Virus record (IMG/VR): IMGVR_UViG_3300031963_000006
Location: 1-64,000 of that record
Length of the DNA: 64,000 bases
Reading direction: 5' to 3' (one strand)
Numbering within the stretch: the stretch's first letter is position 1; every line of letters starts with the position of its first letter. Position numbers and translations under genes: made by a program. Below, piece by piece: positions 13,580 through 55,510 of the stretch. The notes beneath the pieces are model-generated. The model was not told the origin of the DNA and searched no databases. It was given only the letters and a program-made list of their open reading frames with translations.

Positions 13580-13589
13580 ATTTTTAAAA

Positions 13590-14651: not shown

Positions 14652-14652
14652 A

Positions 14653-18353: not shown

Positions 18354-18354
18354 A

Positions 18355-20063: not shown

Positions 20064-20065
20064 AA

Positions 20066-20407: not shown

Positions 20408-20408
20408 T

Positions 20409-22350: not shown

Positions 22351-23765
22351 TAATTCTCAACTAATTCTTTTATATTTTTATCAAAATCAACATAATGGTC
22401 TTGAGTTCCATGTGAATTCATTTGATAATGCTTTATTAACCCTTGAGTAATAAACGGATTATGTTTGTACATTAAACAATAAAAAGTTGTAGACCTTTCG
22501 TGTCCGTGACCTGCTGTTTTAGAGTGTTTAATTAATTCCGACAGAGGTTCAAACCACTTCATATAATCATTAAAAAATGATACTTTCATAGTACAATTAC
22601 TAGTGGTAGACCAAACCAACTTAGGGTTTTGTCTCATATAAAACCTAATTGTTTTTTCAAGGTCGACTTTATAAACCTGTTTGATTGCTCCAAATAATTC
22701 CTCAACCCAATTTTTATTATCTATAAAATGATAATTCGAACAAGGGAATGGTATGTAACCAATCATATTTTGATTTTCATACATAAATTTATCTATGATT
22801 TGTTCTAAATTTTTATTTAAAATAACATCATACTCAAATAGATTTACATATGGAGTTTTTATTAGGTTGTTTTTCCACAACGCATACCATCCTGTGTATG
22901 CATTTATATTTGGATACTCCTCTAAATTATATGGTAAATTACGAGCAATAATAATATTTGAATTATCCTCTATTTTATCAACAGGTCTATTACCTAAAAA
23001 GACATATCTATATTTTTTTAAATTACTAAATTTACCTGATTTTTCGTAATCAATTATAATATCTTGGTCGTGACAAAATATGAAAGTTTCACAAACATTA
23101 TTGTTAGTAATATCTAAAGGTAAATTATTTTTAAATTTTTCTGAGAAAAATATTCGATTATTTTCCCATGTATCATTTGTCATACCAACAGATAAGTGAG
23201 TAACCCTAACATCTGTAACAATTCCTATTTTAACACCATCTAAATAATTTGGAACACAAAACGACAAATCGTAAAAATGGAATCCATCGAATTCCTCATC
23301 AAATTTGTGTTTGATTTTTGTTTTATCCAAAACCATAAATAATCCATCAATCAATACAACCTCTTCAACATTACTAATTGCTTTTGAATAAGTACTAGTC
23401 CATTTTTTTCCTTCATGTTTATGGTTTACAATACCATACATTGTTTGAGATACTTCCCACCATTTACCTGATTCAGGTAAGTATTTAGAACCCGCGAGAC
23501 CAATTACACCAAATTCAGGACTCTTATTAAAATGTTTTATTATTTTTTTACCCCAATTATCCGTATCAAATTCTAAATCATCGTGACACAACACTACAAT
23601 GTCATGTTGTGATTTTTCTAAAATTTCATTATAAGTTTTAGGTAGGGATTTTTCACCATTATTAACAACTTCAATAATTTCAACATTTTTCAATCCACAA
23701 GATTTTTTCAATATTTCAACATATTGTGGATTTGAGTTTCTTGTACTATATCCTATTGTAATCAT
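22350..23765 (-). CDS. two-domain glycosyltransferase (N-terminal GT2-like; second GT-like domain)
   Basis: SLPKTYNEILEKS..DIVVLCHDDL and FDEEFDGFHFYDLSFC in the first domain; YTGWYALWKN...YVNLFEYD in the second. Confidence 0.7.
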   Translation of the reverse strand: MITIGYSTRNSNPQYVEILKKSCGLKNVEIIEVVNNGEKSLPKTYNEILEKSQHDIVVLCHDDLEFDTDNWGKKIIKHFNKSPEFGVIGLAGSKYLPESGKWWEVSQTMYGIVNHKHEGKKWTSTYSKAISNVEEVVLIDGLFMVLDKTKIKHKFDEEFDGFHFYDLSFCVPNYLDGVKIGIVTDVRVTHLSVGMTNDTWENNRIFFSEKFKNNLPLDITNNNVCETFIFCHDQDIIIDYEKSGKFSNLKKYRYVFLGNRPVDKIEDNSNIIIARNLPYNLEEYPNINAYTGWYALWKNNLIKTPYVNLFEYDVILNKNLEQIIDKFMYENQNMIGYIPFPCSNYHFIDNKNWVEELFGAIKQVYKVDLEKTIRFYMRQNPKLVWSTTSNCTMKVSFFNDYMKWFEPLSELIKHSKTAGHGHERSTTFYCLMYKHNPFITQGLIKHYQMNSHGTQDHYVDFDKNIKELVEN

Positions 23766-36078: not shown

Positions 36079-39000
36079 ATGGCCGTTAAAGTTAAAATAG
36101 GTAGTAATAATTATAGTGGTCAAACCGCAAATATAGTATTTTATCCTGAAACGGGTGGTACTATAAATGTAGGTCAACAAATTATACCATATGATTATGT
36201 AACAGATTATTATTTTGGTACATATGAACTTATCTTTAATGCCGACCAATATACATGTAACTTTACAATATCATCCTCTAATCCATTTCCTGTTTACATA
36301 GAACCAACACCTGGTCCTAAAACGTACATATTGGATGGTACCTACAAACAGGACCCTGAAAATTTACCAACCAATGATTTAACTGGCACGTCATTTAATG
36401 GATTAGAAACAAATATACTTTTAGAAAAATATTTTGCAGGAACTTTTGATGGGGGAATATCTCAATTCAGAATGTACGTTGAGCCGTTATCGGCCCCAGA
36501 AGTGAAACATAATTTCAAGTTACTGAAGGACAGGTTTAACATGTTTAATCCTGATTGTCCTGATTGTTTGTTACCTGAATGTGAAATTACAGGGATTACT
36601 TATCAGTTGGCAACACCTGAACCTACAAGTACAAGGACTCCGACTCCAACAAATACCAAAACTCCAAGACCAACTCAAAATCCGACAAGTACACCAACCA
36701 ATACAAATAATCCAACTCAAACACCGGCCAGCACGTCATGTCCGATTGATACACCTAATGTAACCCCAACAAATACAAAAACACCAACCGTAACCAAAAC
36801 TAACATACCAACAAAAACACCTACAGTTACTCAGACAAAAACACCTGACATTACTCAAACACCAACTAAAACATCAACTCCGACTAAAACACAAACAAGA
36901 ACTAATACCTCTACCCCAACACCAACAAATATTGGTACAACAATTTATTCATCACAAACAAATTGTGATTTAACAAACAATATTACAATTGACGGCCCTT
37001 CGATTTATTATTATGAAATAGACTTAGGAAGTGATGTTGGTTTTGTTAATCTAACGTTTAATGCAACTAATATCCCTGATAGATTTAGAGTCGAATGGGA
37101 TGGTAATGTGGTTATAGATACAGGATTTAGAGGAAATCCATTATATAACACTCAATTAAATAATTTGGGTTATCCTAGTGTGTCAGGGGTTGGTAGCGGT
37201 TTTATAACATTTAATAAAACAGCACCTTCACCAACTACTGTGGTATTAATAGTCGAGTCACCGATTCAAGGGGCAATATATAGTTTTAATTTATCATGTC
37301 CTACACCTTATGTTACAACAACTCCAACAAATACTCCGACAAAAACTGAAACTCCGACTAATACTCCGACAAAAACTGAAACAAAAACTCCTACAGTTAC
37401 TAAAACTGAAACACCAACCCCTACCATTACTAAAACAGAAACCCCAACTGTTACTAAAACACCAACTGTTACTAAAACAGAAACAAGAACTCAAACCCCA
37501 ACGAAAACAGAAACACCAACGGTTACTAAGACACCAACCGTTACTAAGACGGAAACCAAAACACAAACTCCTACAAAGACACAGACGCCAACTTACACCT
37601 CAACCCCAACATCAACATATTATTCTCCAGTGAACTTATTCTTCAGCGGTTGTTGTAATCCATATTATATTTATAGAATTTTCAATGTGCCACTTGTTGT
37701 TTCTGAAACGATAGTTGACGGACAAACATATCTAATTCAAGGTGTCGGATTCTCAGGTTGTGGAACGTATTTCGAATCATTATCATCGGCCGACTTCTCA
37801 TATTCTTATATTAGTTTCTCATCAGAAACTGATTGTGAAACTTGTACAATTGGAAGTCCATGTCCTACTCCAACTCCTACCGTCACCTCAAGTAAAACTC
37901 CAACTAAAACCCCAACCACGACAAAAACACCAACACAAACTCCAACTCCAACAAAAACGGAAACTCCGACTCCGACACAAACAAAAACACCTACTAAGAC
38001 AAATACCAAAACTCCAACAGAAACACCAACTAATACTCCAACAAATACAAATACACCGACTGAAACAGTCACACCTACAGTCACTAAAACTCCAACTAAA
38101 ACAAGTACATCTACACCTACGGTCACTAAAACACAAACTCCAACAAAAACTGGAACACCAACAAATACAAAAACTCCAACTTCAACCAAAACTAATACCC
38201 CTACTAACACACCAACAAAAACTAGTACTAAAACACCAACTTCAACTCAAACTAACACCCCAACAGTTACTCAGACACCAACCACAACACCTACAAACAG
38301 TATCACACCTTCAGTAACTAAAACTAACACACCAACAAGAAGTGTTACCCCAACAGTTACTAAAACAAATACTCCTACACAGACTTATCCTAGTGGACCT
38401 GTGGTTAGTGAATGTTCTGTATTATATAATGACAGTACCCTTGTTTATTCGTACACACCACAAACTAATACAAGTGTGTTACTTCCCGTTACGGGGGCTC
38501 AAAGTGGTAATGATATTGCCCACACTACTTCAAAATTATGGATTAATCCTTCAACAAGTCAAACCATAGATGAATGGAATATATCTTTAAATCCGTTTAT
38601 TGCGGTTTATAATCAATCGATTGTATTACCTCACCCTATTGGTAATGGTTTGGCAGCGATTGATAACACAAGATTAATTTCAAGCAACATATCGGTAAAT
38701 CCTAATACAATTGTTGAATTATTAATTGTTGGAGGAAACTTTGTGTCAACACCTAAAATTACACTTCCTGATGGTAGAATCGTCTCAGGTGATTTATTAT
38801 TAACTACAAATAATAAGTTACTTGTAACAACAACTAATGGTGTAAATACCTTCTTGACTCAATATAATTATGACAACGGACAACCTGAAGTTGAAATTAC
38901 TCTAATAATTCCATTACCATGGGGTATGTTTAGTGATAATGGTAATTTATACATAATGAATGGTCAAACTCCTGGTGGAGTTTATAGGATTAACTTAGAT

Positions 39001-39372
39001 TTCCCATATAATCAAACATTTATTATTAATGCCGGAAGACGGATATCTGGAGCGTCCCAACTACCACAATGTGTTGATGTTAACATCAATCCATCCGGTC
39101 AAACATCTACACAAACCCCAACACCAACTGTTACCCCAACTATAACACCAACGTTGACTGTATACCCCCAACCTTTTGCAATATTCATAGAATGTTGTGA
39201 ACCATTTAGAAAGATAAGGGTATTCAATGTTCCCGCATTAGTATTAGCCGGACTAATATCTGACAATGTATACTATGTTGAAGCTATTGGTTTCTCAGGA
39301 TGTGCGACATATTCGCCATTCTTGACAACTTATGACTTCACTTATGAATATTTAAATATAACAACTCCATAA
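36079..39372 (+). CDS. modular Thr/Pro-repeat virion protein (LamG C-terminal strands, beta-sandwich, propeller-like domain, two CC...C modules)
   Basis: AGTFDGGISQFRMYVEPL; DTGFRG module; long TPTKT tracts; CCNPY and CCEPF modules. Confidence 0.8.
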   Translation: MAVKVKIGSNNYSGQTANIVFYPETGGTINVGQQIIPYDYVTDYYFGTYELIFNADQYTCNFTISSSNPFPVYIEPTPGPKTYILDGTYKQDPENLPTNDLTGTSFNGLETNILLEKYFAGTFDGGISQFRMYVEPLSAPEVKHNFKLLKDRFNMFNPDCPDCLLPECEITGITYQLATPEPTSTRTPTPTNTKTPRPTQNPTSTPTNTNNPTQTPASTSCPIDTPNVTPTNTKTPTVTKTNIPTKTPTVTQTKTPDITQTPTKTSTPTKTQTRTNTSTPTPTNIGTTIYSSQTNCDLTNNITIDGPSIYYYEIDLGSDVGFVNLTFNATNIPDRFRVEWDGNVVIDTGFRGNPLYNTQLNNLGYPSVSGVGSGFITFNKTAPSPTTVVLIVESPIQGAIYSFNLSCPTPYVTTTPTNTPTKTETPTNTPTKTETKTPTVTKTETPTPTITKTETPTVTKTPTVTKTETRTQTPTKTETPTVTKTPTVTKTETKTQTPTKTQTPTYTSTPTSTYYSPVNLFFSGCCNPYYIYRIFNVPLVVSETIVDGQTYLIQGVGFSGCGTYFESLSSADFSYSYISFSSETDCETCTIGSPCPTPTPTVTSSKTPTKTPTTTKTPTQTPTPTKTETPTPTQTKTPTKTNTKTPTETPTNTPTNTNTPTETVTPTVTKTPTKTSTSTPTVTKTQTPTKTGTPTNTKTPTSTKTNTPTNTPTKTSTKTPTSTQTNTPTVTQTPTTTPTNSITPSVTKTNTPTRSVTPTVTKTNTPTQTYPSGPVVSECSVLYNDSTLVYSYTPQTNTSVLLPVTGAQSGNDIAHTTSKLWINPSTSQTIDEWNISLNPFIAVYNQSIVLPHPIGNGLAAIDNTRLISSNISVNPNTIVELLIVGGNFVSTPKITLPDGRIVSGDLLLTTNNKLLVTTTNGVNTFLTQYNYDNGQPEVEITLIIPLPWGMFSDNGNLYIMNGQTPGGVYRINLDFPYNQTFIINAGRRISGASQLPQCVDVNINPSGQTSTQTPTPTVTPTITPTLTVYPQPFAIFIECCEPFRKIRVFNVPALVLAGLISDNVYYVEAIGFSGCATYSPFLTTYDFTYEYLNITTP

Positions 39373-39377
39373 TATTA

Positions 39378-41156
39378 ATGTTTAAAAGTGTAAATATATT
39401 AAAATCAGTTAGCCCCGAAGGAGTTTTTCAATTAAATAAAACTTCATTTGATGACATTTTAAAAAATTCACATTCTAAAATTACATTACAGTTACCGATT
39501 GGAAATGAACTTCATAACTTAGAATTAAACAAATCAGAATTATTTGGGTCTAATTTTTATAGAACTTATAGCTCATCTCAAATCTCACAAAGAAATTTGG
39601 GGTCTCACTATAAAGGTAAATTAAGTGGATTTGAAAATTCATCGGTTGCTGTTTCATTCACTGAATTGGGGGTTGTAGGTTTAATTTTGGATGGTGAAAA
39701 TCAATATGAAATTTCCCCATTTGGTACTGATTCATATAAAGTTTTACCAGTCGAGGGTGTACATGAATTTGAATGTGGGGCCGGTCTTTCCCCGGACTAC
39801 GACGAGGAAAAAAAGAACTCGTTAGAAAACAATCTCAGGTTAAGTTCCAATGGGGATATTTTAATGAAATCCCCAACCGCAACAACAAGATGTCTTAATG
39901 TTTATTGGGAGGCGGATACGGACATATATGACACGCTAGGAGTAAACTCAGAATCATATTTAGCATCACTATTTAACGCGGTACAATTATTATTTTCTAA
40001 TGATGGTATACAAATTTATTTATCTGATTTATTCGTAAATTCAGGAACTTCATTTTACTATCCAACCATTCCATATAATCAAATTGGTACTTTGGATATG
40101 TTATATGAATTTGAGGTGGTTAGACCGACATTTAATGGGGATGCCGCGCAACTTTTTTCATTTAACAAAGGGTATGGTGGAGGAGTTGCTTGGGTTGATG
40201 CGTTATGCGCAAGGCCATACGCTTTTTGTTGGATAACATCGTCATTCCAACAACCAATGACATATAGTTGGACCGTGGCGGCTACAACACATGAACATGG
40301 ACACACGTTCGGTTCACCACACACATTTTCTTGTAGCTGGAATACGAATAATTTTCAACCTGGAGACAATCCCCGAGGTTGCTCAAGAATTGATAGTTGT
40401 AGAATTGAATGTACCGCAATTTTGAGCTCTGGTTGCACTGTGGCTCAACAAAATCCAGGATATGGAACTTGTAGTATAACATCTTCATCAAATTGTGGAG
40501 CATGTTGCGCTCCCAATTATTGTTGTGGAGTCCCTGGAAGTCCGGCTCAAGGTGGAACAATTATGAGTTATTGTCACCAAGTTTCGGTAGGTACTAATCT
40601 GAACTTAGGTTTCGGACCACAACCTAGACAAAGAATGCTCGATGCAATCAATAGCCTACCTTCAACTTGTATAGAATGTTTGGGCCCACCACCTGAAGAA
40701 ACTCTAACACCAACACCAACTCTCACTAAAACACCCACCCCGACACCATCAATAGGTACCAGTCCTAATCCTACCCCAACTCAAACTATAACACCTACTA
40801 AAACAATAACTAACACACCAACTTTAACTAAAACTCCAACACAAACTAAAACACCAACAATAACTAAAACTTTAACACCTAGTATAACCCCAACAATAAC
40901 CAGCACACAAGTCAATAATAATTGTCAGTATTGTTTGAGTTTACATCCATGTACAGTTAATAGGTTTTTTTGGCAATGTTGTGAGCCGTATGATAGTTTT
41001 AGAGTTTATCTAATACCTTTTGATGTTTCAGAGACTCTAGTAAATGGAAATACATATTATGTAGAAGCCGTTGGTTTTTCAGGATGTGCCGTGTATGATG
41101 TAACATTAACAAATGCGGATTTTTCATATGAATATATAAACATTATAACTCCTTAA
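39378..41156 (+). CDS. reprolysin-like (M12B) zinc metalloprotease with prodomain, Thr/Pro stalk and C-terminal CC module
   Basis: HEHGHTFGSPH at 40290-40322, Met-turn GTIMSYC, GGVAWVDALC, and prodomain HYKGKLSG...VAVS and FECG. Confidence 0.88.
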   Translation: MFKSVNILKSVSPEGVFQLNKTSFDDILKNSHSKITLQLPIGNELHNLELNKSELFGSNFYRTYSSSQISQRNLGSHYKGKLSGFENSSVAVSFTELGVVGLILDGENQYEISPFGTDSYKVLPVEGVHEFECGAGLSPDYDEEKKNSLENNLRLSSNGDILMKSPTATTRCLNVYWEADTDIYDTLGVNSESYLASLFNAVQLLFSNDGIQIYLSDLFVNSGTSFYYPTIPYNQIGTLDMLYEFEVVRPTFNGDAAQLFSFNKGYGGGVAWVDALCARPYAFCWITSSFQQPMTYSWTVAATTHEHGHTFGSPHTFSCSWNTNNFQPGDNPRGCSRIDSCRIECTAILSSGCTVAQQNPGYGTCSITSSSNCGACCAPNYCCGVPGSPAQGGTIMSYCHQVSVGTNLNLGFGPQPRQRMLDAINSLPSTCIECLGPPPEETLTPTPTLTKTPTPTPSIGTSPNPTPTQTITPTKTITNTPTLTKTPTQTKTPTITKTLTPSITPTITSTQVNNNCQYCLSLHPCTVNRFFWQCCEPYDSFRVYLIPFDVSETLVNGNTYYVEAVGFSGCAVYDVTLTNADFSYEYINIITP

Positions 41157-41172
41157 AAAGTATATATAAAAT

Positions 41173-43191
41173 ATGAAACATTTAAGTCTACATAAAAGTT
41201 TTACAAATGATGGTGTTTTTGAATTAAATTTAAATACAATAACCTCACTTAAAACTCAAACTAATGAAAGAATTTATCTGTCTTTACCTATAGATGGGAT
41301 TGAAAAACAAGTTGAAATATATAGAACAAATATTGGGTCCGATGATTTTAAAGTTGTAAATGAATTAGGTCAAATTTTATCGTATGATTCAGGAATTCAC
41401 TACGGTGGTCGGGTCATTGGCTCTGAAAAATCATTTGTTGCATTATCTTTTAGTGATGACGGAATTATCGGAATAGTTCAAGATAATACTAAAGAGTATG
41501 GGTTTACCAAAATAGATGAAAATTTTCATAGACTTCATGAAACGATTAATGATAACGAAGGGTTTGAATGTGGATGTGAATTACTATCACATAATAATAA
41601 TTTACAGGAATTAAAATTATCCCCAAAAACTTTAACGTTACCATATGCTTCTAAATGTATTAATATACGATGGGAAGCGGATTATGATGTGATACAACAA
41701 TTTGGTGGAACGGGTCCGGCCATAACATGGTTGACCGCACTTTTTAATGCACAAAAACAACTTTATGCTAATGATAATATTCAGGTTAATTTAGCCTTAT
41801 TATTCTTATGGGAAAATGGTCCTTCAGGTTTTGTTGTGGGAACAACAGATGTTATACTAGATGCCTATGTAAATTATAGAAATGCAAATGGTGGCATTGC
41901 CGAGAATTGTGGTATGCTACTGAGTTTTGGAACTTCTCCAACAAGCAATTCAGGTGCGGGTATCGCATATGTGGGGGCTCTTTGTGGTCCCAACAAATAT
42001 GGTTATACACAATTAAAAAGAGGAGATTCTACAGGAACTCCTAGTTCTACTGTATATAGTAGAAGTGTTAAAGTAGTTACTCACGAGCAAGGTCACTTAT
42101 TAGGTTCAAGACATACTTTTAGATGTAATTGGAATACCGCTTGGGTATATGGAGATACTACTTTTGGTGCTGAGGCCATTGACGGGACTTCCACGGTAGA
42201 GGTACCTCCAGGAGTTCCTGCGTGTGCTCAACTACCAATACCACCCGGATTTCAAGGAACTATAATGAGTTATGGAGACAGTGCAGGAACCGCTCCGATA
42301 AATTTCGCATTAGGGTTTGGTCCAATACCTAGACAAAGAATGTATGACTTCATTAATAACAATTTTGCGTGTTTAACATGTCAGGCGGTTCCATTTGAAA
42401 CCCCAACACCAACTCCAACAACAATTACTCAAACTCCAACACCAACTCCAACCAAAACACCAACACAAACCCCCACAAAAACTCCAACTAAAACAAATAC
42501 ACCAACTGTAACTCCAACCAAAACATCTACTCCAACACCAACTAAAACTATAAACGCAACACCTGACCCCACTCAAACTCCAACTATAACTAAAACAGTA
42601 ACAAATACAAATACTCAAACCACCACCGTAACACCCACCAATTGTTGTAGTAGATTTACATTAACTTCAGGAGTAAACGACACTGGAGGTAGTACATTTA
42701 ATGTAATTTCATGTAATGGAATCCCGCAAACAACGACTGTACCTCAAGGAACTTCAATAGATATTAATTGCGCATCCACAGTAACATTAACTTCAGGAAC
42801 AGGAACATTTGTAAGATATCCTGGTTGTGTTTGCACAAGTCCAACCCCAACTAAAACTAACACCCCTACAGTAACCCCAACTACCACGATAAATCAAAGT
42901 CCTCAACCGACCCCTACACCAACAGCAACACCAACGGCTACACCTCTTAGGGGAGATTGTGCTTATTGTATAAGTATTTATCCTTGTTCCGTTAGTAAAT
43001 ATTTTACCAGTTGTTGTGAACCATTTGAAAACATTAGAATATTTTTAATACCAGCAAATGTCGCCGACACATTAATAGATGGTGAATCATACTATGTTGA
43101 GGCTGAAGGTTTTTCTAATTGTGCTATTTATAATGAAAGTATAACAACCGCTCAGAATTCGTATAAATATATAAGTATAACCCCTAATTGA
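41173..43191 (+). CDS. reprolysin-like (M12B) zinc metalloprotease paralog 2
   Basis: [11 protein letters not shown] at 42082-42114, [16 protein letters not shown], prodomain HYGGRVIG and FECG; Thr/Pro stalk; CCEPF C-terminus. Confidence 0.88.
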
Positions 43192-43202
43192 TGATTTAGT
43201 AT

Positions 43203-46200
43203 ATGAAACAATTGAATTTACTCAGAAATATTAATTTAGATAATTCATTTGAAATTGATGTGTCGGAATTAAGGACTGTATCATCACAGAAATTTGATAC
43301 AATGACTATGTCAATTCCGTTAGGGGGTATTAATAAAAACGTTATTCTAAAAAAAGTTAATATATTTTCTGAGAATTTTACGGTCACTACATCTGATGGA
43401 GAAAATATCGAATGGGATTTGGGTGAACATTATAGAGGAGAAATCGAAGGAGAAGAAAATTCTTTTTGTTCTTTAAGTTTCACAAATAATGAAATATATG
43501 GACATATCGTAACGACTGGCTCAACATATGATATAAATTTTGTCTCAGGCTCAACATACAGAACATCAAGTGTAAATGAAGAAAATCCTATAAATTTTAC
43601 ATGTCATCATGAACCTAAAGAAGGTCAAACATATTCAAATCCATATAACCCTTCTTTAAATACAAAAAAAAACACCGGTCTTAAAACATTAAATCCTTAT
43701 GTTGCAGACCAGGCAACTAAATTGGTAAAAATAGATTGGGTAGTTGATTATGACATACGACTTTTGAAAGGTGCAAATACAGTTTCGTATATAACTTCAA
43801 TTTTTAATGCAACAAAAACTTTATATGAAAACGACGGGATTTTTGTCGTACTTAATTTTTTACACATTTTTACCACATCATATTCACCGTATAGAACAAC
43901 ACCTCTCACGGTACCTATCAATGACGGGTGCGGGTATGGTTCCTGTTCTATGGTTTTATTGTTGTTTAATTTCAGATATAGTTTAGGTAACGGAATTTAT
44001 CCCGCAGGAACTAGCGCGGCTAATTTTTCCGGTGATTTAAAACATTTGTTAACCGCTACTTTTCCAACAACCTCTTTCTCAAATCCTGCTAATAAAATAC
44101 AAGGACTGGCCGATGGTATACAGGTTTTGTGTAACCCAATATCTTCTGATTATACCGTAGTAATTGATGGTCAAGAATATTTGGCGACAAGTACTAATTC
44201 ACCAGTATGTTTCAGTCAAATTGATGTAAATGCAACCGCTAACTCAACAACATATTCATCTACAGTACAAGTAATTACACACGAACAAGGTCATTTAATG
44301 GGTTCAAATCATACCCACGGATGTTACTGGAACACAACCAATTTTGTACCCGGAGGTAACCCAATTGGTTGTAACAGAATTGATAGTTGTGTTACTTTTG
44401 AAACTTATACTTTTTTAGGTTGTCCATCATCAGTTCAAACTGTTTTTGAAATTGTAAATGGTGTGTGTCCTTTTCCGGGCACCCCACCCAACAGTGGTGG
44501 TACCATAATGAGTTATTGTGGTTTAGTCGGAGGAGGAAGTCAACTTTTTACAAACGGATTCGGCCCCCAACCACAACAAAGAATTGTAAATTTCATTAAT
44601 TCATTATCTTGTTTACAGTCGCTAGACACCACACCAACCCCAACTCCTACTTTAACCTTAACCCCGACCAAAACCCCGACATCTACTCCGACTAAGACAA
44701 TCAATGCCACCCCAAACCCAACTCAAACTTCTACAATAACAAAAACATCAACTGTAACTCCCACTAAATCTGTAGGAGTTAGCCCAAACCCAACCACCAC
44801 ACCGACAATAACTCCAACAAATACCGTTACAAGAACTAAAACTAAAACACCAATTTCAACAAATACCACAACACCAACAATAACTCCCACTAATGGTGAT
44901 GATTGTAAAAACTGTACAGACCAACACCCATGTATAACACAAACTCCGACAGTAACTCCAACTCAGCCATGTGATACCGTGATATCACAACCATCAACAA
45001 GTCCATTATTTAATATTGGTTTATCTAAATATAATAACTCAGGGTATACTAACATTGGAACCAGATTTTACTCATACGGATTTCAATTAGGAGGAAGTGG
45101 TTCGACATATTATTTTTCAAACACAAATGATGTATGGAAAAGTACCGACAGTACAAATGGTCCCTTAAACAGAAGTGGTATTTGGTCATTATCTACATTT
45201 CCGTCTAATACTTGGTTGGGATTTTCTTTTTGTATTGATGTTGTTGATTTTGCTAATTTTTATTACGTTGGTTTTGGTGCGGATAATGCCTTTAGATTGA
45301 CTATAGATGGTATCGAAACTATTAACACACTGTTGGGTGGTTATAACAATAGTACTTTGACATTTAGTAATTGGCATGTATATCAGATTCCACTATACCC
45401 TGGTCATCACGTATTGAACGTTTATGGTCTAAATCTATCACAAACAACATCAGGTGTTTTTGGATGTGAAATTTATCAAAATACACTTGATGAATTAACA
45501 GGAGCAACCTCACCCAATAACTTAAACATTATTTTTTCGACTAGCTCTTATTCCGAATCAAATGCCGAAATAATACAATCATCAACTGGTTTACAATTGA
45601 ATAGTGGATATACTTGTCCTTCTGGTTTTGTTTATGAATCGTGTACGGGTGATTGTGTAAGATTCATATCATGTCCACAACCAACTTTGACTCCAACCAC
45701 AACAAACACACCAACTAAAACTAACACAATAAATTTTGTAGGTGTTACACCCACTAAGACACCTACCCCAACTAAATGTTGTTCAACATATATACTTTCA
45801 TCAAGTCCTTCAGATGTTACAGGTTCAACATTTACAATAGTACGATGCGTTGGTAATTTGTTTTTAACTCTACCAGTACCTGTTGGACAATCTCAAACTA
45901 TAACATGTTCATATAATGCAACTTTAATAAATGGATTAGGTTCGATAACACAATTACCTGGTTGTGATTGTAACACGGTTACCCCAACACCAACCCCAAC
46001 CACTATAGAAGATTTGGGCCCCTGCTTCAATCGTTGGATACCAACCTATACGTTCCCTTTTAACCAAAATCAACAAACTGTATTTACCGGTTTTACACAA
46101 GGAATTTTTGTTGAGATGGTACTTTCTGGTTCGGTTGAAATTGCAACCTACAACGGTAATCCTCCAAGTTGTGACGTTATTAGAAGTTTTAATCCTTATA

Positions 46201-49200
46201 CTTTAACCGCATTAAAGCAAGTTTATGCGGGTGGAATTGGGCAAAGTATTTTTAAACAACCAACAGCCCAAAGTGCTTTTGTTATAACATTTAATTTTGG
46301 TCAACCAATTAACGAAGTTACATTAGTTATAGGAGGTTCTGGAACATACGATTTCGGAGGTGGCAACGAAGTTTTTATAATAACAACAAATACTGAAATT
46401 CCAACAATTACATCAAGTATAAATTGTTATACCACAATTAATAACAACCAAATTCTTTCAGGTGCAAATATAGTACCACCACCTGTAGGTTCAGGTACCG
46501 GAGGTGGGTTATTCACTATAAATTGTATTACGGATTATACAACTTTAGTAATATCTGGTGCCGGTGGGTATGATGGGTCTGAAATTTCTATTTGTGAAAT
46601 TTATGTACCAGGTACAACTAGAACCCCAACCCCAACCATCACACGTACAAAAACACCAACTATAACTCCAACCACATCTTTTGGTTTTGTCCCAACTTCT
46701 ACACCCACTATAACACAAACAAAAACCAACACAAATACTTCGACACAAACAAAAACCAACACCCCGACAAAAACACAGACTAAAACACCCGGTTTACCAC
46801 AAAGTCCGACTCCAACACCAACTAATTGTTGTTCTAATTTTCAAATATCACTATTACAAGGATTTAATAGTGCGATTTACAATGTCAGCTCATGTCAAGG
46901 ACAATCAGGAACTTTTACATACACAGGTTTATCCTTTATAACAATAGAATGTGCAACAAACGTTACAAATGTAAGCGGAGCGTCTATTGTTAGGTTACCA
47001 GGATGTGGATGCCCAACACCAACCCCTACTCCAACACTAACTCCAACACCTGTTACACAATGTTCTAATTTAGTTTGGCCTGACCCAACAATAGTTGTGA
47101 ATGGAATAACAATAACTGTTAATAGAACAGGAAATACTTATTTATTAATACAACCACCATCAAATGACAGACCAATTTGTGGTACTGGAATATCAATACA
47201 ATATCCATCGTTATCTTTGGGTAGTGGGTTAAATGGGATAGGTGTTACAGGTCCTCCATCCTTTTTCTCAAATTGGACAGTTAGTTTAACTTTTAGTCAA
47301 CCAATTACAAGTATAACAATCGCATTAAGAGGTGCCGGATGTACATGTCAGTATTCACCAAATGACCCTGAAAATTTCCTATTTACCACAAATACAGGTA
47401 TACCAACAATCAACCCTATCTTAATTTGTAATGGGGTTGTTACAGGTAATGAAATTATATTACACAGTACGGCGCCAATTTGGGAAGGTGGGGTTACTGG
47501 TGACGGAATTTTTGAAATTAAGAACTGTTTAGGGTTTACAAATTTAACAATTACAGGGGACGGAGGTTATTTAGGAACTGCAATAGGAATTTGTGACACA
47601 TCAATTAACCCAAATCAATGTATTACTCCAACACCAACTCAAACAAAAACACCAACTCAAACAAAAACACCTACTGTTACACCAACTTCAGGAGGGGAAA
47701 TTAATCCTTGTCCGTCAATTTTATTACTCCAAAGACAAGAATCTTTTGGTGAATTTTATGTATCATTTTATGACTTTGATTTGAACACCACATATACTTT
47801 GGATGTGCCAAACATAGATGATTTTGTACAAGATATTGCATATACTTTCGATAAACTTTGGACAGTAAAGCCGGCAATTGCCCCTTTTGACCCAAATCCT
47901 GTTGTTGGTTTCAGAGAATGGAATATAACATGGAACCCTTTTGTTGCTACCTATAATAGAGATATACTATATCCTGGTCCGTATATTCCTGGTGATAATG
48001 TAATTTTTGGATTGGGTTTATTTGCAATTAATAATACTACTTTGATAAGCTCATCGGGTTATGATAGTTTTCCAGAGAGAATTATTGAAGTTGATATATC
48101 AACAAATCAAACGGTAATTACCCAAAAAATGGCTCTCCCATCTATGACACAAGCGAGTGGAGACATTTATCTAAGGTCGGATAATTTATTATTTGTTGGT
48201 ACCAAAAATTTCAGTACCGGAGTTTTAGGAGTCAATGTGTATAATTACCTATCAACGTCGAATACTCCCGTATATTCAATTTCGATTCCAATAGGTACTC
48301 CAGGTACGCCTTTCGGAAGCTCGATAGCGGCAATATTTGAATGGGATAATGAGATGTACGTTATGAGAACTCAATCCAATCCAGATAAAACGGAAACTTA
48401 TAGGTTAAATTTAACCCCTCCTGGTAGTGCCGAATATGTAGGTGTATTTAGTAATCTATTCAACGTATTCGGAGGTTCAAGTATAGTTAATTGCCCTACC
48501 CCAACCCCAACTCCTACACTAACATCAACCCCAACAAAAACTACTACCCCAACTCCAACACCAACTAGAACCTTACTAAGTAGTTTATGTTCCGGTCGAT
48601 TTATTGCTCCAACAACATATAACGGTGTTAATGTTACATTCGCATCAACTGGGGACATACAGACTATTTTATCTCCATCGGCGTTATTACCATCTTGTGG
48701 CCAAATGAATTGGAATGGTATACCGGCCTATCTTTGCGGGGCCTCAAGTAATTCTACTTCGACTCCTACAAGTAGTTTTTCACTAACATTTAATTTTAGT
48801 TTATCTGTTAATAACGTATCAATAGTTCTAAACGGTGCTGGATGGGGAGGAAATGAAAATTTTGTATTCACTACTGACACAGGTATCCCAACAATTTCAA
48901 GTACATTTAATTGTTATTCAACAATAATTGGAAACCAAATTATTTCAGGGGCTGGAGCTCCATCAACTCCACCTAATGGGCCTACAGGAGGCGCCGGTGT
49001 TTTCATAATAAATAATACAAACCCATATACATCACTCACAATAACAGGTGCGGGAGGTTATGACGGAACCTATTTAAATATTTGTGATTTTAATGTAGAA
49101 CAAATCACTCAAACCCCAACCCCAACTAAAACTCAAACACCAACTGTGAGTCAAACAGTAACACCTACTAAAACACAAACTCAAACTAACACTACGACTG

Positions 49201-50120
49201 TTACACCAACTAAGACAAACACTATGACACCTACGAGTTCAATTGGTGCAACACCACCTAGTACACAAACCCCTACATCAACATCAACACCAACAGTTAC
49301 CCAAACACAAACAAACACCAAAACAAATACCGTAACACAAACCAAGACTCCAACACAAACCATCGGGATTACCCCTTCAAATACTCAAACTACGACTCCT
49401 ACAGTAACTAATACAAATACAAATACTAAAACTCAAACTCCTACTAAAACTAAAACACCTACTCAAACCTCAACACCAACAACAACTTTACCAAAAACTC
49501 CTGACCAAACATTAACACCAACAACCACTCCAACTGTAACTAAAACCAAAACTCAAACACCATCTAATACAACAACTCAAACTCAGACTCCATCATCATC
49601 TGGACCTTGCCGAGCCCCTCAAGTTTTGTCAACAATCAGAACTGCCACTAGAATTTATAATGGATGCACTTGTATTGACCCAATTACAAGAGGGTGTAAT
49701 GAAACCTTCGGGAATTGTAGCAACTGTCCGGTCGGAAGTACTCAAGGGTGTTCACCTAATTGTGCTTGTTTTTCAAATTTAATAAACATCGGAACAGTTG
49801 GGAATGATTATAACGATAACGCAGGTTGTTCGTGGTATTCGGATTTTATGAATTTTACTAATAGGGCGGTACTACCTGTTGAAATTAAAGTAGAGGGTAA
49901 TATTACTAACTGGACTCAATTACAAGTCGGGATGAGAGTCTATCCAGGTAATCAATCACCTAACAACCCATGTGGTCAGGCGGCAGTTCGTAATTATTGG
50001 GTTAGTTCAAATTCGTTATTAAATTATTATAGCGATTTAGAAGGTCCTCCGGTAATTGTTCGAGTTCAAACAATCAATGGAATTAATCAAATAACATCAA
50101 TTTGGCAATGCACGGGTTAA
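43203..50120 (+). CDS. giant (2305 aa) M12B metalloprotease with PA14-like, repeated beta-sandwich, propeller-like and Cys-rich modules on Thr/Pro linkers
   Basis: HEQGHLMGSNH at 44280-44312, GTIMSYC, prodomain HYRGEIEG and FTCH; multiple TPT tracts. Confidence 0.85.
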   Translation: MKQLNLLRNINLDNSFEIDVSELRTVSSQKFDTMTMSIPLGGINKNVILKKVNIFSENFTVTTSDGENIEWDLGEHYRGEIEGEENSFCSLSFTNNEIYGHIVTTGSTYDINFVSGSTYRTSSVNEENPINFTCHHEPKEGQTYSNPYNPSLNTKKNTGLKTLNPYVADQATKLVKIDWVVDYDIRLLKGANTVSYITSIFNATKTLYENDGIFVVLNFLHIFTTSYSPYRTTPLTVPINDGCGYGSCSMVLLLFNFRYSLGNGIYPAGTSAANFSGDLKHLLTATFPTTSFSNPANKIQGLADGIQVLCNPISSDYTVVIDGQEYLATSTNSPVCFSQIDVNATANSTTYSSTVQVITHEQGHLMGSNHTHGCYWNTTNFVPGGNPIGCNRIDSCVTFETYTFLGCPSSVQTVFEIVNGVCPFPGTPPNSGGTIMSYCGLVGGGSQLFTNGFGPQPQQRIVNFINSLSCLQSLDTTPTPTPTLTLTPTKTPTSTPTKTINATPNPTQTSTITKTSTVTPTKSVGVSPNPTTTPTITPTNTVTRTKTKTPISTNTTTPTITPTNGDDCKNCTDQHPCITQTPTVTPTQPCDTVISQPSTSPLFNIGLSKYNNSGYTNIGTRFYSYGFQLGGSGSTYYFSNTNDVWKSTDSTNGPLNRSGIWSLSTFPSNTWLGFSFCIDVVDFANFYYVGFGADNAFRLTIDGIETINTLLGGYNNSTLTFSNWHVYQIPLYPGHHVLNVYGLNLSQTTSGVFGCEIYQNTLDELTGATSPNNLNIIFSTSSYSESNAEIIQSSTGLQLNSGYTCPSGFVYESCTGDCVRFISCPQPTLTPTTTNTPTKTNTINFVGVTPTKTPTPTKCCSTYILSSSPSDVTGSTFTIVRCVGNLFLTLPVPVGQSQTITCSYNATLINGLGSITQLPGCDCNTVTPTPTPTTIEDLGPCFNRWIPTYTFPFNQNQQTVFTGFTQGIFVEMVLSGSVEIATYNGNPPSCDVIRSFNPYTLTALKQVYAGGIGQSIFKQPTAQSAFVITFNFGQPINEVTLVIGGSGTYDFGGGNEVFIITTNTEIPTITSSINCYTTINNNQILSGANIVPPPVGSGTGGGLFTINCITDYTTLVISGAGGYDGSEISICEIYVPGTTRTPTPTITRTKTPTITPTTSFGFVPTSTPTITQTKTNTNTSTQTKTNTPTKTQTKTPGLPQSPTPTPTNCCSNFQISLLQGFNSAIYNVSSCQGQSGTFTYTGLSFITIECATNVTNVSGASIVRLPGCGCPTPTPTPTLTPTPVTQCSNLVWPDPTIVVNGITITVNRTGNTYLLIQPPSNDRPICGTGISIQYPSLSLGSGLNGIGVTGPPSFFSNWTVSLTFSQPITSITIALRGAGCTCQYSPNDPENFLFTTNTGIPTINPILICNGVVTGNEIILHSTAPIWEGGVTGDGIFEIKNCLGFTNLTITGDGGYLGTAIGICDTSINPNQCITPTPTQTKTPTQTKTPTVTPTSGGEINPCPSILLLQRQESFGEFYVSFYDFDLNTTYTLDVPNIDDFVQDIAYTFDKLWTVKPAIAPFDPNPVVGFREWNITWNPFVATYNRDILYPGPYIPGDNVIFGLGLFAINNTTLISSSGYDSFPERIIEVDISTNQTVITQKMALPSMTQASGDIYLRSDNLLFVGTKNFSTGVLGVNVYNYLSTSNTPVYSISIPIGTPGTPFGSSIAAIFEWDNEMYVMRTQSNPDKTETYRLNLTPPGSAEYVGVFSNLFNVFGGSSIVNCPTPTPTPTLTSTPTKTTTPTPTPTRTLLSSLCSGRFIAPTTYNGVNVTFASTGDIQTILSPSALLPSCGQMNWNGIPAYLCGASSNSTSTPTSSFSLTFNFSLSVNNVSIVLNGAGWGGNENFVFTTDTGIPTISSTFNCYSTIIGNQIISGAGAPSTPPNGPTGGAGVFIINNTNPYTSLTITGAGGYDGTYLNICDFNVEQITQTPTPTKTQTPTVSQTVTPTKTQTQTNTTTVTPTKTNTMTPTSSIGATPPSTQTPTSTSTPTVTQTQTNTKTNTVTQTKTPTQTIGITPSNTQTTTPTVTNTNTNTKTQTPTKTKTPTQTSTPTTTLPKTPDQTLTPTTTPTVTKTKTQTPSNTTTQTQTPSSSGPCRAPQVLSTIRTATRIYNGCTCIDPITRGCNETFGNCSNCPVGSTQGCSPNCACFSNLINIGTVGNDYNDNAGCSWYSDFMNFTNRAVLPVEIKVEGNITNWTQLQVGMRVYPGNQSPNNPCGQAAVRNYWVSSNSLLNYYSDLEGPPVIVRVQTINGINQITSIWQCTG

Positions 50121-50212: not shown

Positions 50213-53200
50213 ATGTCCCAATCAATTGTTATAGAGTATATAAATTTTAGTGGAGAGACTGCGGTAATTTTATTCACCCCATTTGGTGAAACCGATGTTA
50301 TTAATTTAGGTACCGTTATACTACCGTATGACTTTAATCCTTCATTATTAACACCCCCAAAAGATATTTATGGTTCATATAATGTTATAACTTCAGGAGG
50401 AAGTTGTTCAAATATAGTTACAATTTTACCGACCACACCAAACCAAACACGAACACCATCAAGGACCCCAACACAAACAAAAACTCAAACAATTACCCCG
50501 TCAAATACCGAAACCCCTACCGGTACCCCATGTCCGACTAAAACATCAACTCCGACTAATACCCAAACGCCAACCTTACAGCCAACTGAAACTCCAACAT
50601 CAACTTTATGTCCTACTAAAACCCCAACTGAAACTCCTAAAAGTACATTAACACCTACTAAAACGCCAACTCAAACTAAAACTCAAACGTCTACCCCAAC
50701 CAATACACCAACTAATACCAAAACACCGACCAAAACAAGTACCGAAACTCCGACTAATACTCCTACTAAAACAGAAACTCCAACCCAAACTAAAACCGAA
50801 ACACCTACAAAAACCCCTACAAAAACAAATACTCAAACACCCACTAATACTCCAACTAACACCGGAACTCCAACTCCAACTAACACCGGAACTCCAACTC
50901 AAACTAAAACGAGTACCCAGACTAATACAAGTACGCCAACTAAAACCGAAACCCCGACCCAAACTAAAACACCAACCATAACCCCAACCCAAACTAAAAC
51001 CCAAACCACGACTCCAACACAAACAAAAACCCCTACCCAAACAAAAACAGGTACTCCAACACAAACAAAAACAGGTACTCCAACAAAAACTAATACACCA
51101 ACTCAAACAGTTACACGTACAGTAACAAAAACATCATCCCAAACCCCAACTCCAACAACAACACCTCCAGGTGAGTATACAGGTACTAACGTTTGTGACC
51201 AATACATAGTAGTTTCAGATGGCTATAGAGGGACTCGTCAATTCCAAGTTGATATCGGTTCTCAGATTGGGTCATTAAATATATTTTTTAATGCCGGTAA
51301 TGTTCCTGATAGATTTTACTTCTATTACGATGGCGTATTAGAAAGAGATACAGGATTTAGAGGTGACCCGTCATTTAACCCTCAACTGAATTCCGCCGGT
51401 TATCCTTCTGTGAATGGTGCGGGAACCGGTTCTTTTGTGTTTAACAAATCCACATCTTCCCCAACAACCATTGAAGTTATCGTTTTTTCCCCATTCGAGC
51501 CTGTTGATTTTAACTTATATATCTCATGTCCTATACCTGAACCAAGTCAAACTCCGACTAAAACTCAAACACCTACTAGTACTCAAACTAAAACACCGAC
51601 AAAATCAATAACTCCAACAAAAACTTCAACTCCAACTATAAATCCATCACAAACCCCAACAAAAACCCAAACTCAAACTAAAACACCCACAAAGACATCA
51701 ACCACTACACAAACTCCTACAAAAACTTCAACACCTACACAAACACCAACATCGACGCCTCCATTTGAATTTAGTGGTACCGCAGTGTGTGACCAAAAAT
51801 TCTTTGGTTCTCCTTCAGATTATGGAACATTGTATTACACAATAGATGTTGGAAGTGAGATAGGACCTATAATTTTAAATGTAAATTCCAATTTAACCCC
51901 TGTTTGGTTTAGATTATATTGGAATTCAACATTAGTTATTGACACAGGATTTATAGGAAATCCATTGTATAATACCGAATTGAACAATTTAGGTTATCCT
52001 GATGTATCCGATACTGGTTTAGTTTCAATTTCATTTGATAAAACATTATCATCACCAACTGAAGTTATATTAGAAATAGTTGTTCCAATTTTAGGGGCGT
52101 CATGGAATGCTCTAGTTGAATGTCCGTCAGTCACTCCAACACCAACTCCAACAATGACCCAAACTAAAACCCCAACAATAACTTCAACTAATACTCCAAC
52201 AAATACCAATACTCCAACTCAAACTAAATCACAAACCCCAACAAATACAAATACACCAACTGTTACTAAAACGGTTAGGGCTACTTTAACCCCAACTCAA
52301 ACCCAAACTTCAACCATGACTCAAACTAGAACTCAAACAAAAACTCCAACAAATACTATAAGTCAAACCCCAACTCAAACCCAAACTCAAACCCCAACTA
52401 ACACTCAAACCCCAACTAACACTCAAACGGATACACCAAGGTCAACTAGAACCCCAACCGCAACTCCAACTGACCCGCCTCCAACTCCCCCATCGACAAA
52501 TACTCCAACGCAAACAAAAACAAATACTACAACTAATACCTCCACACCGTCTCAAACTGCAACACAGACTAAAACTCCTACTCAAACTACAACCCAAACT
52601 AAAACATCTACTCAGACCCCAACCCAAACTAAAACATCTACTCAGACCCCAACACCAACAAGAACTCCAGATGTATCTCCTCCATCAACACCTAGTCCAA
52701 CACCAACAAATACAGGAACTCAAACAAGTACCCCAACAAATACTCAGACTCAAACTCAAACTCCAACAAATACTCAGACTCAAACTCAAACTCCTACAAA
52801 TACGCAAACTCAAACTAATACTCCTACAAATACGCAAACTCAAACTAATACTCAGACTCCGACTAAGAGTCAGACACCAACTAACACCTCAACTAAGACA
52901 CAAACACCAACTCCGACCCAAACTTCACCAACTGCCGTTCCTTGTGCCTCTGAATGTATGATATTATTTAATACATCAACTGATTTATATGTTTATGATT
53001 TTACTGCCGATACATCAACTCAGATAACACCGGCAAACTTATTTGAAAGTGATGATATTGCTCACTATTGGAATCCAATTACAAATGATGGTAGACTTTG
53101 GATATACGGTAATCAAGGTTCGGGTAATCAATACTTTAGAGAATTTAGAATAACATCAATATGTCCATTTACTTTTGACCCTGATTATGGAGGTACAGGA

Positions 53201-55510
53201 ATTAATTATAGAAATATTCCATTCCCTGTTGGTATGCCGAGTCCTTTAGGGAATGGTTTAACCTACTTAGAAACTACCGGAGGTCAACACGTTTTAATTG
53301 GAAGTTTAACTCTAATAACCCCTAATAAGATGGTTAAGTTTTTTATAAACTCAACCGCTTTACCATATACCTCATCTTATACCGAGCTATTTGAAATATC
53401 TTCAGCGGTATTAACACCTGACATTGTTTATGGTGATGTTATTGTGACTAATAATTTGGCTGCGGGAGGACAAAAAATAGTATTTACAAAATATGACCCA
53501 TCACTTCCAGGTACTTCGTACCTAACACAATATGATTATAATGGTTTATTTTATGAATTTGACACTAATCCTATAGGACAAAATTCTCCACCATTAGCAA
53601 CTAACAATATAAATCAACCTCAAGGGTTATTCCAATGGGAGGGGTTAAATTATGTAATACAAAGTAATACCGGTGATGTTTATAACGTTAATGGTAATAT
53701 TCCATATGATAGAACTTTAGTTGGAAATGTCGGACAAATTAATGTTAGAGGTGCTTCTCAGACAATTAATTGTTTGGGTAATAATTTAAGTGGAGGGACT
53801 CCTTATTTTAGATATTCGAATAGAACCGATTTTGCCCCAATAAATAATGAATATGTACAAAGTCTTATACTGGTTAACGGTATTAAAGAATTTGATGTTG
53901 ATTTTGGCGATGGTACTATTATTAATTACAACACTACTTTAACGGATGTTACACAAACTCACGTTTATTCACCGTTAGCTCAAGTATATACCGCCACAAC
54001 ATATGGATTTAAATTAAATGGTAGTAATAACCCAAATATTATTAGTGTTGCTTCAGATATATCTATTAGATTTAGAAATATTTCAGAATTGTTAGCAGGT
54101 GACGATGACCCATATACTTTTGGTTCTTTCCCTGGAATGCTGGGCCTAAGATTTGAAAATTGTAGTTTTGCTAATTTGAACTCAGTTGAGACCTCTCCAT
54201 ATTTTACAACCATTCAATTTGACGGACATGATAACCAATTATTAGAACTTAATACTTTTAATTTAGGTTCTAAAACTAAGTTGGAACAAATTTTTATGGC
54301 TAATTGTGATATGACAGGATTTTCTCATGATTTAACATCAACTTTATTAAATCAAGGAGCGTCTGCCTTTAATTTTTTAAACAATCCACTCCTATCTGAG
54401 GTCAATATTGAATTACCAACAACAATATTAACATATTTTGGATTAAGAACTTCAAACAATATTTCCTCATTACAATCAATTAATAGTTTAAATGGTTTTG
54501 AAAATCTAACAGGATTAACCAAGATAGATGTTCAAGGTAATATTTTAACAGGGTGGACATATAATTTACCTGAAAATTTAATTGAATTTGATATTTCTGA
54601 TAATGCAAGACCTATTCTATTTGCACCAAATCAGTATGGTATAAGAGAATTAAATATTGATTTAACAAATAACGATAAATTAGAAATTTTAAATGTTTCT
54701 AGAAATAGACTTACGGCAATTACTGACACAATTATAAACTGTATAGTTTTGGATGAATTATATTTGGAAATAAATCAATTAACTACTATACCTGATTTAC
54801 CAAATTCAATTACTAGATTAGAATTACAATATAATTCTTTAGTAACTTCGTTTACATCTTACTTACCAAATAATTTACAGGTTTTCTATGGTTATAATAA
54901 TTCAAATATAACAGATTGGACTATACCTTTAACAAATACTCAGTTAACCACGTTCTATGTTTATAGTTGTAATATTTCAGGACCTTGGGATACCCAATTC
55001 CCAAGTACTATAAGAAATATTAGATTAGATGGGAATGATATTACATCGATTAATATAAACTTAGTGAATGGTGCAACCACACTTATAATGTCAGATAATA
55101 CCACATTAACACAGATGACTAATTTATCATCCAATTCTACTATCCAAACTTTAGAATTAAATAATTGTGGTTTCACAAGCTTCTCTAATTTGTTTTCAAC
55201 AAGTTTACCTTCAACTTTAAGGGTATTTAAATTTGATGAAAATCCAATAATTGGTTCGACATGGCCCACAAATGCCTTTTTGAACGCTAATATTAATAAC
55301 GTAGTTATGAGACGTTGTGGTTTAGATACGACATCAGTGAACAGAATCATAAACGACATTGCGGCAACAACTACCGCCACCAACGGTACTCTTAATTTGA
55401 GTAACCTAGGAGTTACTAATGGAACCCCTAATTCACCAAGAGATTCGGGTAGTGATGATGCATTAGCCATTTTACAAGCCGCCAATTGGACGGTTACAAC
55501 CGCACCTTAA
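50213..55510 (+). CDS. giant Thr/Pro-repeat protein with beta-sandwich modules, propeller-like domain, PKD-like domain and leucine-rich repeats
   Basis: Three long TPT tracts; two DTGF modules; FDVDFGDG (PKD-like); LRRs such as [14 protein letters not shown] and [28 protein letters not shown]. Confidence 0.82.
50852..50899 (+). repeat. perfect 24-bp tandem duplication
   Basis: CCAACTAACACCGGAACTCCAACT x2, in frame (PTNTGTPT). Confidence 0.85.
52591..52650 (+). repeat. perfect 30-bp tandem duplication
   Basis: AACCCAAACTAAAACATCTACTCAGACCCC x2. Confidence 0.85.
52741..52853 (+). repeat. 30-bp tandem repeat, about 4 imperfect copies
   Basis: TACTCAGACTCAAACTCAAACTCC(A/T)ACAAA x2, then TACGCAAACTCAAACTAATACTC... 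x2. Confidence 0.85.

Follow-up and report, generated by a model that had tools for sequence, protein, structure and literature searches.

In a 64,000-nucleotide stretch of a freshwater phage genome (the window, bases 133-64132 of the 321,403-bp IMG/VR virus record IMGVR_UViG_3300031963_000006), three adjacent genes, here termed P1, P2 and P3, encode what we identify, from sequence profiles and structure modeling, as reprolysin/ADAM-like zymogen-type proteases. Coordinates are those of the window, unless marked "genome", which refers to the whole record. We judge it moderately probable that the three proteins serve as latent, targeted, extracellular proteases acting on the coat of the host. 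The best explanation of their origin is that one Bacteroidota surface-protease gene was captured by a T4-like jumbo phage and duplicated within the phage lineage, and the signal peptide and type IX secretion system (T9SS) domain of the bacterial parent appear to have been replaced by Thr/Pro stalks with binding-type modules. To judge from their sequences, all three copies are intact, and they are predicted to be functional. The genes follow one another in the same orientation on the + strand, separated by 16 and 11 nt, and their features are as follows.

39378-41156, + strand: P1, 592 amino acids (aa), predicted reprolysin-like zymogen-type protease
39774-39776, + strand: P1 predicted Cys-switch residue Cys133 (FECG), in a prodomain of approximately residues 1-136
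40290-40322, + strand: P1 zinc motif HEHGHTFGSPH (residue 305), in an adamalysin-like catalytic domain of approximately residues 170-435
40554-40571, + strand: P1 Met-turn GTIMSY (Met396)
40683-40880, + strand: P1 Thr/Pro linker
40926-41153, + strand: P1 Cys-rich C-terminal module
41173-43191, + strand: P2, 672 aa, predicted reprolysin-like zymogen-type protease
41569-41571, + strand: P2 prodomain cysteine Cys133 (FECG)
42082-42114, + strand: P2 zinc motif HExxHxxGxxH (residue 304)
42256-42273, + strand: P2 Met-turn GTIMSY (Met365)
42643-42831, + strand: P2 "CCS" module, with a linker on either side
42952-43188, + strand: P2 Cys-rich C-terminal module, as in P1
43203-50120, + strand: P3, 2305 aa, predicted reprolysin-like zymogen-type protease
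43602-43604, + strand: P3 prodomain cysteine Cys134 (FTCH)
44280-44312, + strand: P3 zinc motif HEQGHLMGSNH (residue 360)
44499-44516, + strand: P3 Met-turn GTIMSY (Met436)
44979-45668, + strand: P3 PA14-like module, the first of several set between Thr/Pro linkers
45783-45965, + strand: P3 CCS module
46017-46601, + strand: P3 beta-sandwich module, recurring twice downstream
47691-48482, + strand: P3 Kelch-like beta-propeller, followed by a stalk of ~160 aa
49593-50117, + strand: P3 distinct C-terminal module

The three proteins are mutual paralogs (28-30% identity over 440-490 aa, E 1e-40 to 1e-46), and a hidden Markov model (HMM) search assigns each of them to the Pfam family Reprolysin_5 (PF13688) above the curated cut-off; no NCBIfam model was found for any of the three. 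Although a phmmer search of the Protein Data Bank with P1 alone gave nothing useful, a profile of the whole family retrieved snake-venom reprolysins and ADAMs from the same database (best E 1.6e-13), and its pro-region matched the ADAM17 propeptide (E 0.0035). An AlphaFold2 model of P1, in which the predicted local distance difference test score exceeds 90 in the prodomain and catalytic core and is low in the Cys-rich insert, linker and C-terminal module, aligns with zymogen ADAM17 across both prodomain and catalytic domain (residues 10-443, Z 26.5), with snake-venom and ADAM catalytic domains (Z ~20, root-mean-square deviation 2.5 Å, 189 of ~200 residues aligned), and with profragilysin-3 (residues 4-427, Z 18.6). 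Cys133, His305, Glu306, His309, His315 and Met396 (P1 numbering) are invariant in a 73-sequence alignment with bacterial homologs. From the third His to the Met-turn, P1, P2 and P3 carry inserts of 81, 51 and 66 residues with 11, 2 and 5 Cys, respectively. A preliminary description of this DNA had portrayed three adjacent reprolysin-like paralogs, each with a prodomain Cys motif, an intact HExxHxxGxxH, a GTIMSY turn, no signal peptide, and Thr/Pro linkers followed by accessory modules, all of which is borne out here; its "divergent active-site loops" also hold, in the sense of these inserts.

The loss of export signals sets the phage proteins apart from their relatives, and also from ~25 other proteins of the same phage, an S8 protease among them, that have kept a signal peptide. 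The open frame upstream of the ATGs of P1, P2 and P3 extends for only 10, 1 and 1 codons, and their N-terminal hydrophobicity is far below that of signal-peptide-bearing homologs, which together exclude a signal peptide. No Pfam match to the T9SS sorting domain (PF18962) was found in the three proteins at E up to 0.01, and their C-termini consist of phage-specific modules. Most of the bacterial homologs carry both a signal peptide and PF18962, in agreement with the earlier statement that such enzymes are normally secreted in Bacteroidota; the bacterial parent would have been exported, with its C-terminus as the surface-attachment point, whereas the phage copies would undergo no export. For a broad protease made in the cytoplasm, it would make sense to keep the latency domain while dropping the export signals. 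Proteins without a signal peptide are cytoplasmic at first, and could in principle act inside the cell, or be injected, as effectors that break down cytoplasmic proteins of the host for takeover or anti-defense. We find this scarcely credible, given that the high Cys content, the Thr/Pro stalks and the PA14-like and propeller modules all mark extracellular proteins, and that a Cys-switch zymogen would remain latent in the reducing cytoplasm.

Comparison with cellular genomes locates the source of the family. Outside the phage lineage, the closest proteins are the "M12 family metallo-peptidases" of Bacteroidota (30-34% identity), and because these matches span at least 95% of the first 440 residues, the N-terminal pro-region belongs to the homology. 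Relatives are encoded at no fewer than 545 loci in species-representative genomes, nearly all of them Bacteroidota. In a maximum-likelihood tree of 100 rows, with midpoint rooting only, 11 signal-peptide-less, linker-bearing proteases (P1-P3, two from the syntenic viral contig L007, and six metagenomic clusters) form one clade (Shimodaira-Hasegawa-like approximate likelihood ratio test 99), nested among Flavobacteriales, Chitinophagales and Saprospiraceae sequences. Within this clade, P2 groups with one L007 protein (support 100), P3 with the other (96), and P1 with four metagenomic clusters, a branching by which the P1, P2 and P3 types would be older than the split from related phages. The types also occur in varied combinations on other contigs, with P1 type followed by P3 type on L132, P2 type by P3 type on L145, and P3 type by P2 type on L007, and with differing numbers of accessory modules on the three. 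One clade together with such varied combinations points to a single capture, followed by duplication, long retention and module shuffling.

Measured against strain variants by the Nei-Gojobori method, the ratio of nonsynonymous to synonymous substitution rates (dN/dS) is 0.03-0.17 in prodomain and catalytic domain alike (0.026 in the P2 pro-region), so all three genes, including their prodomains, are under purifying selection. The least conserved part is the hinge between prodomain and catalytic domain (36-62% identity), which acts as a recombination breakpoint, e.g. between P0001 and P0002, whose pro-regions are 99% identical and whose catalytic domains are 68% identical. Relatives exist in which the protease is fused to a glycoside-hydrolase core domain, and the related viral contig L038 encodes a 2766-aa double-protease fusion. 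A fourth phage-type lineage was noted at locus L039 (P0006/P0007), with the order metzincin, Thr/Pro linker, Glyco_hydro_cc (PF11790), and no signal peptide.

Beyond the catalytic domains, the linkers of P1, P2 and P3 comprise 66, 126 and 417 residues, with 41-44% Thr and 19-24% Pro, and are encoded by degenerate tandem repeats. The earlier term "mucin-like stalks" holds for their composition only. The linker DNA at 40700-44950 shows many joints and loose ends in metagenome contigs, which could reflect either length variation driven by the repeats or cross-talk among linkers during assembly. Outside the linkers, Cys makes up 3.0-4.6% of residues, compared with 1.3% genome-wide, as is typical for proteins outside the cell. 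Modeling of P3 residues 593-1760 gives an all-beta structure, with a first module that matches PA14-domain proteins (E 1e-9) and a Kelch-like six-bladed propeller at residues 1497-1760 (E ~2e-5). The Cys-rich module of ~75 aa that ends P1 and P2 also occurs twice in the neighboring 1097-aa protein and once in a 1634-aa protein elsewhere in the genome; an exhaustive profile search found 30 carriers in 1.84 billion representative proteins, and in 12 of the 14 best carriers, all from this phage lineage, the module sits at the extreme C-terminus. A word-index search with this C-terminal module returned its own cluster only, and Atlas look-ups with the module and with the N-terminus of the neighboring fibrils described below returned only unnamed viral clusters. 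The binding-type modules suggest that the target is a surface rich in glycans and protein. With export signals lost, and stalks and sugar-binding-type modules gained, the proteins therefore probably cut host-surface proteins outside the cell.

The record itself is bounded by a 259-bp terminal repeat, has a G+C content of 32.7%, uses the standard genetic code and encodes a tail sheath, baseplate wedge, T4-type terminase, portal and gp23-like capsid protein, together with a DNA polymerase, DnaB, ribonucleotide reductase and a ClpA-like ATPase; it is a complete T4-like jumbo myovirus from freshwater. Bacterial contamination of the viral record was considered and rejected, as the proteases sit between phage core genes on a contig bounded by direct terminal repeats and the same gene arrangement recurs in independent assemblies. 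A near-identical protease region is found in many freshwater and lake metagenomes from 2019-2025. The host is probably a freshwater Bacteroidota, as inferred from ~25 phage open reading frames (ORFs) with Bacteroidota-style signal peptides, a phage-encoded SprB-repeat protein and the Bacteroidota origin of the proteases; the closest cultured matches of the sheath protein include Flavobacterium phages. The aquatic "moraphage" lineage is characterized by Bacteroidota hosts, ClpA and a T4-like core (PMC12619734), and membership of this phage in that lineage is plausible, as a candidate assignment.

The protease genes lie in a phage genome among tail-fiber-like genes, which flank them on both sides. 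They belong to a tight, co-oriented gene run with gaps of 5-92 nt; no terminator-like sites were found between the protease genes, and scans for sigma-70 promoters and terminators gave results at or below chance. The main features around them are listed here.

12027-23765, - strand: sugar-nucleotide/glycosyltransferase island, with GT2, GDP-mannose 4,6-dehydratase, DegT aminotransferase, epimerase, GT11, Fringe-like GT31 and GT2-like genes
32534-35080, + strand: lineage-core protein, 848 aa, the conserved left border of a variable island
36079-39372, + strand: "fibril" protein, 1097 aa, upstream of the proteases, its stop 5 nt before the P1 start
50213-55510, + strand: "fibril" protein, 1765 aa, downstream of the proteases, with the same N-terminal module and a 534-aa Thr/Pro linker
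59822-62668, + strand: tail-fiber/tailspike-like protein, 948 aa, on the right side, with a PHROG tail fiber match (E 1e-14) and tailspike matches

More than 1000 metagenomic protein clusters contain the 848-aa core protein at 55-84% identity, and its residues 48-175 weakly resemble an annotated tail fiber of Clostridium phage phiCT453A (E 5e-7). In the 1097-aa fibril, an N-terminal module of ~60 aa is followed by long Thr/Pro stalks, a beta-propeller-family module and two Cys-rich modules, and the 1765-aa fibril has a weak leucine-rich repeat (LRR) match as well as a beta-propeller-family module. The ~60-aa module heads both flanking fibrils (36079-36273 and 50213-50407) and a third protein (genome 142747-147651, - strand). 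It was found at 127 viral loci (including L146-L225) on contigs of up to 322 kb, always at the N-terminus of the ORF, and in most cases a Thr/Pro or Ser/Pro stalk comes next, with distal parts that vary. This architecture is what would be expected of particle-attached fibrils, and makes the N-terminal module a candidate particle-attachment module of large freshwater phages. LRR matches were noted in the third module-bearing protein (genome 142747-147651) and in the 1765-aa fibril (50213-55510).

This neighborhood bears directly on where the proteases act. They may be structural fibers of the virion, with a protease head on a stalk that cuts the host protein coat at adsorption, and this we regard as a serious possibility, while leaning slightly toward doubt. 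The genes stand between tail-fiber-like genes and in the same run as the putatively anchored fibrils, with which the proteases have distal modules in common. The N-terminal pro-region is the best conserved part and is delimited by recombination, as in fiber anchors; the Cys-rich module, at the extreme C-terminus in most of its best carriers, occupies the place of the surface-anchoring T9SS domain of the bacterial parent; and the giant sizes (2305 aa in P3, 2766 aa in the fusion on L038) would suit fibers. On the other hand, P1-P3 have no recognizable attachment domain, and among the best 80 of the 127 fibril-module loci none joins that module to a metzincin motif. An N-terminal anchor would also mean that removal of the prodomain detaches the enzyme, and no homolog was found among cultured phages. 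Virion display, as originally proposed, is thus no more than plausible.

The same observations can be read, with only slightly more hesitation, as the signature of free enzymes. These would be released at lysis and attach by their C-terminal modules to neighboring cells or debris, either clearing the way for the progeny by stripping surface proteins or destroying the receptors that debris carries. The layout of catalytic domain, Thr/Pro linker and binding modules is that of bacterial exo-enzymes, the putative anchor module of the fibrils is missing, copy number (2-3) and order vary between strains, and relatives fuse the protease to a glycoside-hydrolase core. Less easily reconciled with free enzymes are the embedding of the genes in the tail-fiber region, co-oriented with structural-looking genes, and the size of P3 and the strongly conserved N-terminal region, which are easier to explain for a fiber. 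In a combined arrangement, which we think improbable, the fibrils would be fixed to the particle by their N-terminal module and the latent proteases would dock onto them via the shared Cys-rich module, forming a "cellulosome-like" proteolytic brush. If that were true, a virion coat of glycosylated, switchable proteases and lectin-like modules would digest the protein coat of Bacteroidota on contact, with T9SS-anchored adhesins such as SprB as targets, and would give the glycan depolymerase tailspikes their first proteolytic counterpart. The contrast drawn in the preliminary description, of proteases rather than glycan depolymerases, fails because a tailspike-like gene (59822-62668) lies in the same block, relatives are fused to glycoside hydrolases, and P3 has a PA14-like module.

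For latent, targeted, extracellular proteases, we envisage that P1-P3 would be made in the cytoplasm of the infected cell alongside the neighboring stalked fibrils and tail-fiber-like proteins, would be held inactive there by the prodomain cysteine, which would block the zinc, and would leave the cell only at lysis. Outside, the binding modules would hold the proteases on the glycan and protein coat of the host; activation would result from oxidation or from a cut in the poorly conserved hinge, perhaps made by serine proteases that the phage itself encodes, and the activated enzymes would then cut surface proteins that shield receptors. Substrates of the kind named at the outset (S-layer, adhesins, biofilm protein) are conceivable.

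Several observations weigh against this reading. The adamalysin signature is HExxHxxGxxHD, with an Asp directly after the third His, whereas in P1-P3 and the bacterial homologs the third His is followed by Thr. The P3-type ortholog on L007 (L007:9989-13687) reads HEQGHAFDSPH, with Asp in place of Gly in the zinc motif; its near relative P0022 keeps the Gly. One such ortholog, along with a prodomain constraint as strong as that on the catalytic domain, would suit binding proteins instead of enzymes, i.e. a metzincin that is permanently latent or an adhesin head for a host surface protein, similar to silent ADAMs. We hold this to be very unlikely, since catalytically silent ADAMs lose catalytic residues, whereas all three paralogs retain every one of them (three His, Glu and Met) and the family shows no variation at these positions. 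For latent extracellular proteases, a further difficulty is that the distal modules of P1-P3 are common to the fibrils but the fibril N-terminal module is absent from them, which counts against tethering to the virion by that route. Moreover, the whole protease block is missing at this position in the close relative L136 (backbone proteins 81-97% identical). There, small genes after the 848-aa gene lead directly to the DNA polymerase, whereas here ~43 kb lie between a 209-aa gene and the polymerase (window 36079 to genome ~78800). Because L136 lacks the block between the 848-aa region and the polymerase, the block is part of a strain-variable island and is dispensable for the lineage. Finally, signs of expression are weak: a handful of short identical contigs in two lake metatranscriptomes, which may be DNA carry-over.

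Some of the island genes lie, in L136, upstream of the core 848-aa gene. In the present genome, the pair 72245/74399 resembles a diverged copy of 29167/32666. The glycosyltransferase island, which is interspersed with PhoH and an exonuclease, is a candidate source of stalk glycosylation; a glycosylation island is present there, too, in the relative without the protease block. A further glycosyltransferase gene is encoded at genome 63077-64327 (+ strand; PHROG 24687, E 9e-164). The motif ATATTTAT was found 10-45 nt upstream of ~60 start codons genome-wide, with ~15-fold enrichment in upstream regions. Examples precede window 32534, window 59822 and genome 87768. The motif may be a general promoter element of the phage; because it precedes structural and replication genes alike, it is uninformative on timing. 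Host-surface-like modules (SprB repeats, a proprotein-convertase P-domain and Laminin_G_3) occur in large proteins at genome 137038-139659, 72245-74356 and 308376-311534.

Other protease-like genes were also noted in the genome. A 775-aa Peptidase_S8 subtilase (genome 305969-308296, + strand; locus L051:3169-5496) has kept a Bacteroidota-type signal peptide, unlike the three metzincins; its beta-rich C-terminal tail has the look of a sorting domain, but HMM searches detected none. A 422-aa protein (genome 147685-148953, - strand; L049:8025-9293), encoded between two stalked proteins, has a NAL1/trypsin-like fold (Atlas template modeling score 0.66-0.67), and its homolog on L038 is fused ahead of the metzincin in the 2766-aa protein. 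A 222-aa lipoprotein-like ORF (genome 271466-272134, + strand) contains HEVGHTLGLVHC, followed by C-x4-C, L-M and, later, CxxC, with a weak Reprolysin_5 match, a pattern that we take to resemble archaemetzincins.

We found no described phage counterpart of these proteins. Searches with the DNA and with P1 among 50,697 cultured-phage records yielded no homolog, the only significant match in a BFVD structure search was a giant-virus "ulilysin" and no phage protein, and a full-text literature search found no report of phage reprolysin-like proteins, metzincins or virion metalloproteases. To our knowledge, known phage depolymerases cut glycans or peptidoglycan. If our reading is true, a selected array of adamalysin-type zymogens in a widespread lake phage would add proteolysis to the path-clearing toolkit, which would suit hosts with a surface dominated by secreted proteins, such as Bacteroidota with a T9SS. 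It would also illustrate how a secreted bacterial enzyme can be refitted for a virus, with export signals dropped, the latency domain kept and binding modules shuffled on Thr/Pro linkers. The surrounding stalked-protein system, with its N-terminal module at 127 viral loci, is a candidate surface decoration of large freshwater phages that has so far been untouched.

Among known systems, the T9SS-exported M12 family metallo-peptidases of Bacteroidota are the closest, with the same invariant Cys, HExxHxxGSxHT, GTIMSYC Met-turn and GFGPQP motif; in comparison, the phage copies have neither signal peptide nor T9SS domain and are shorter by ~60 N-terminal residues, and they add Cys-rich stretches inserted after the zinc site and before the Met-turn, as well as Thr/Pro stalks and lineage-specific modules. 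ADAM17 and the snake-venom metalloproteinases (M12B) share the prodomain and catalytic fold, zinc motif, Met-turn and prodomain cysteine, but identity is 15-22%, the phage proteases have neither disintegrin nor Cys-rich ADAM modules, and their source is a phage and not an animal. Profragilysin-3 of Bacteroides fragilis is a bacterial adamalysin-like domain kept latent by a large N-terminal prodomain (~10% identity); fragilysin is a secreted single-module enzyme whose prodomain uses a different inhibitory residue. Baculovirus enhancin, which belongs to another peptidase family (M60-like), is a particle-associated metalloprotease that digests the mucin barrier of its host. With enhancin and with the tailspike and tail-fiber depolymerases of phages, the proteins described here would share the concept of a virus enzyme that is encoded in the host-recognition gene region and clears away a host surface barrier ahead of contact with the receptor, one that in this case would be proteolytic and under zymogen control.

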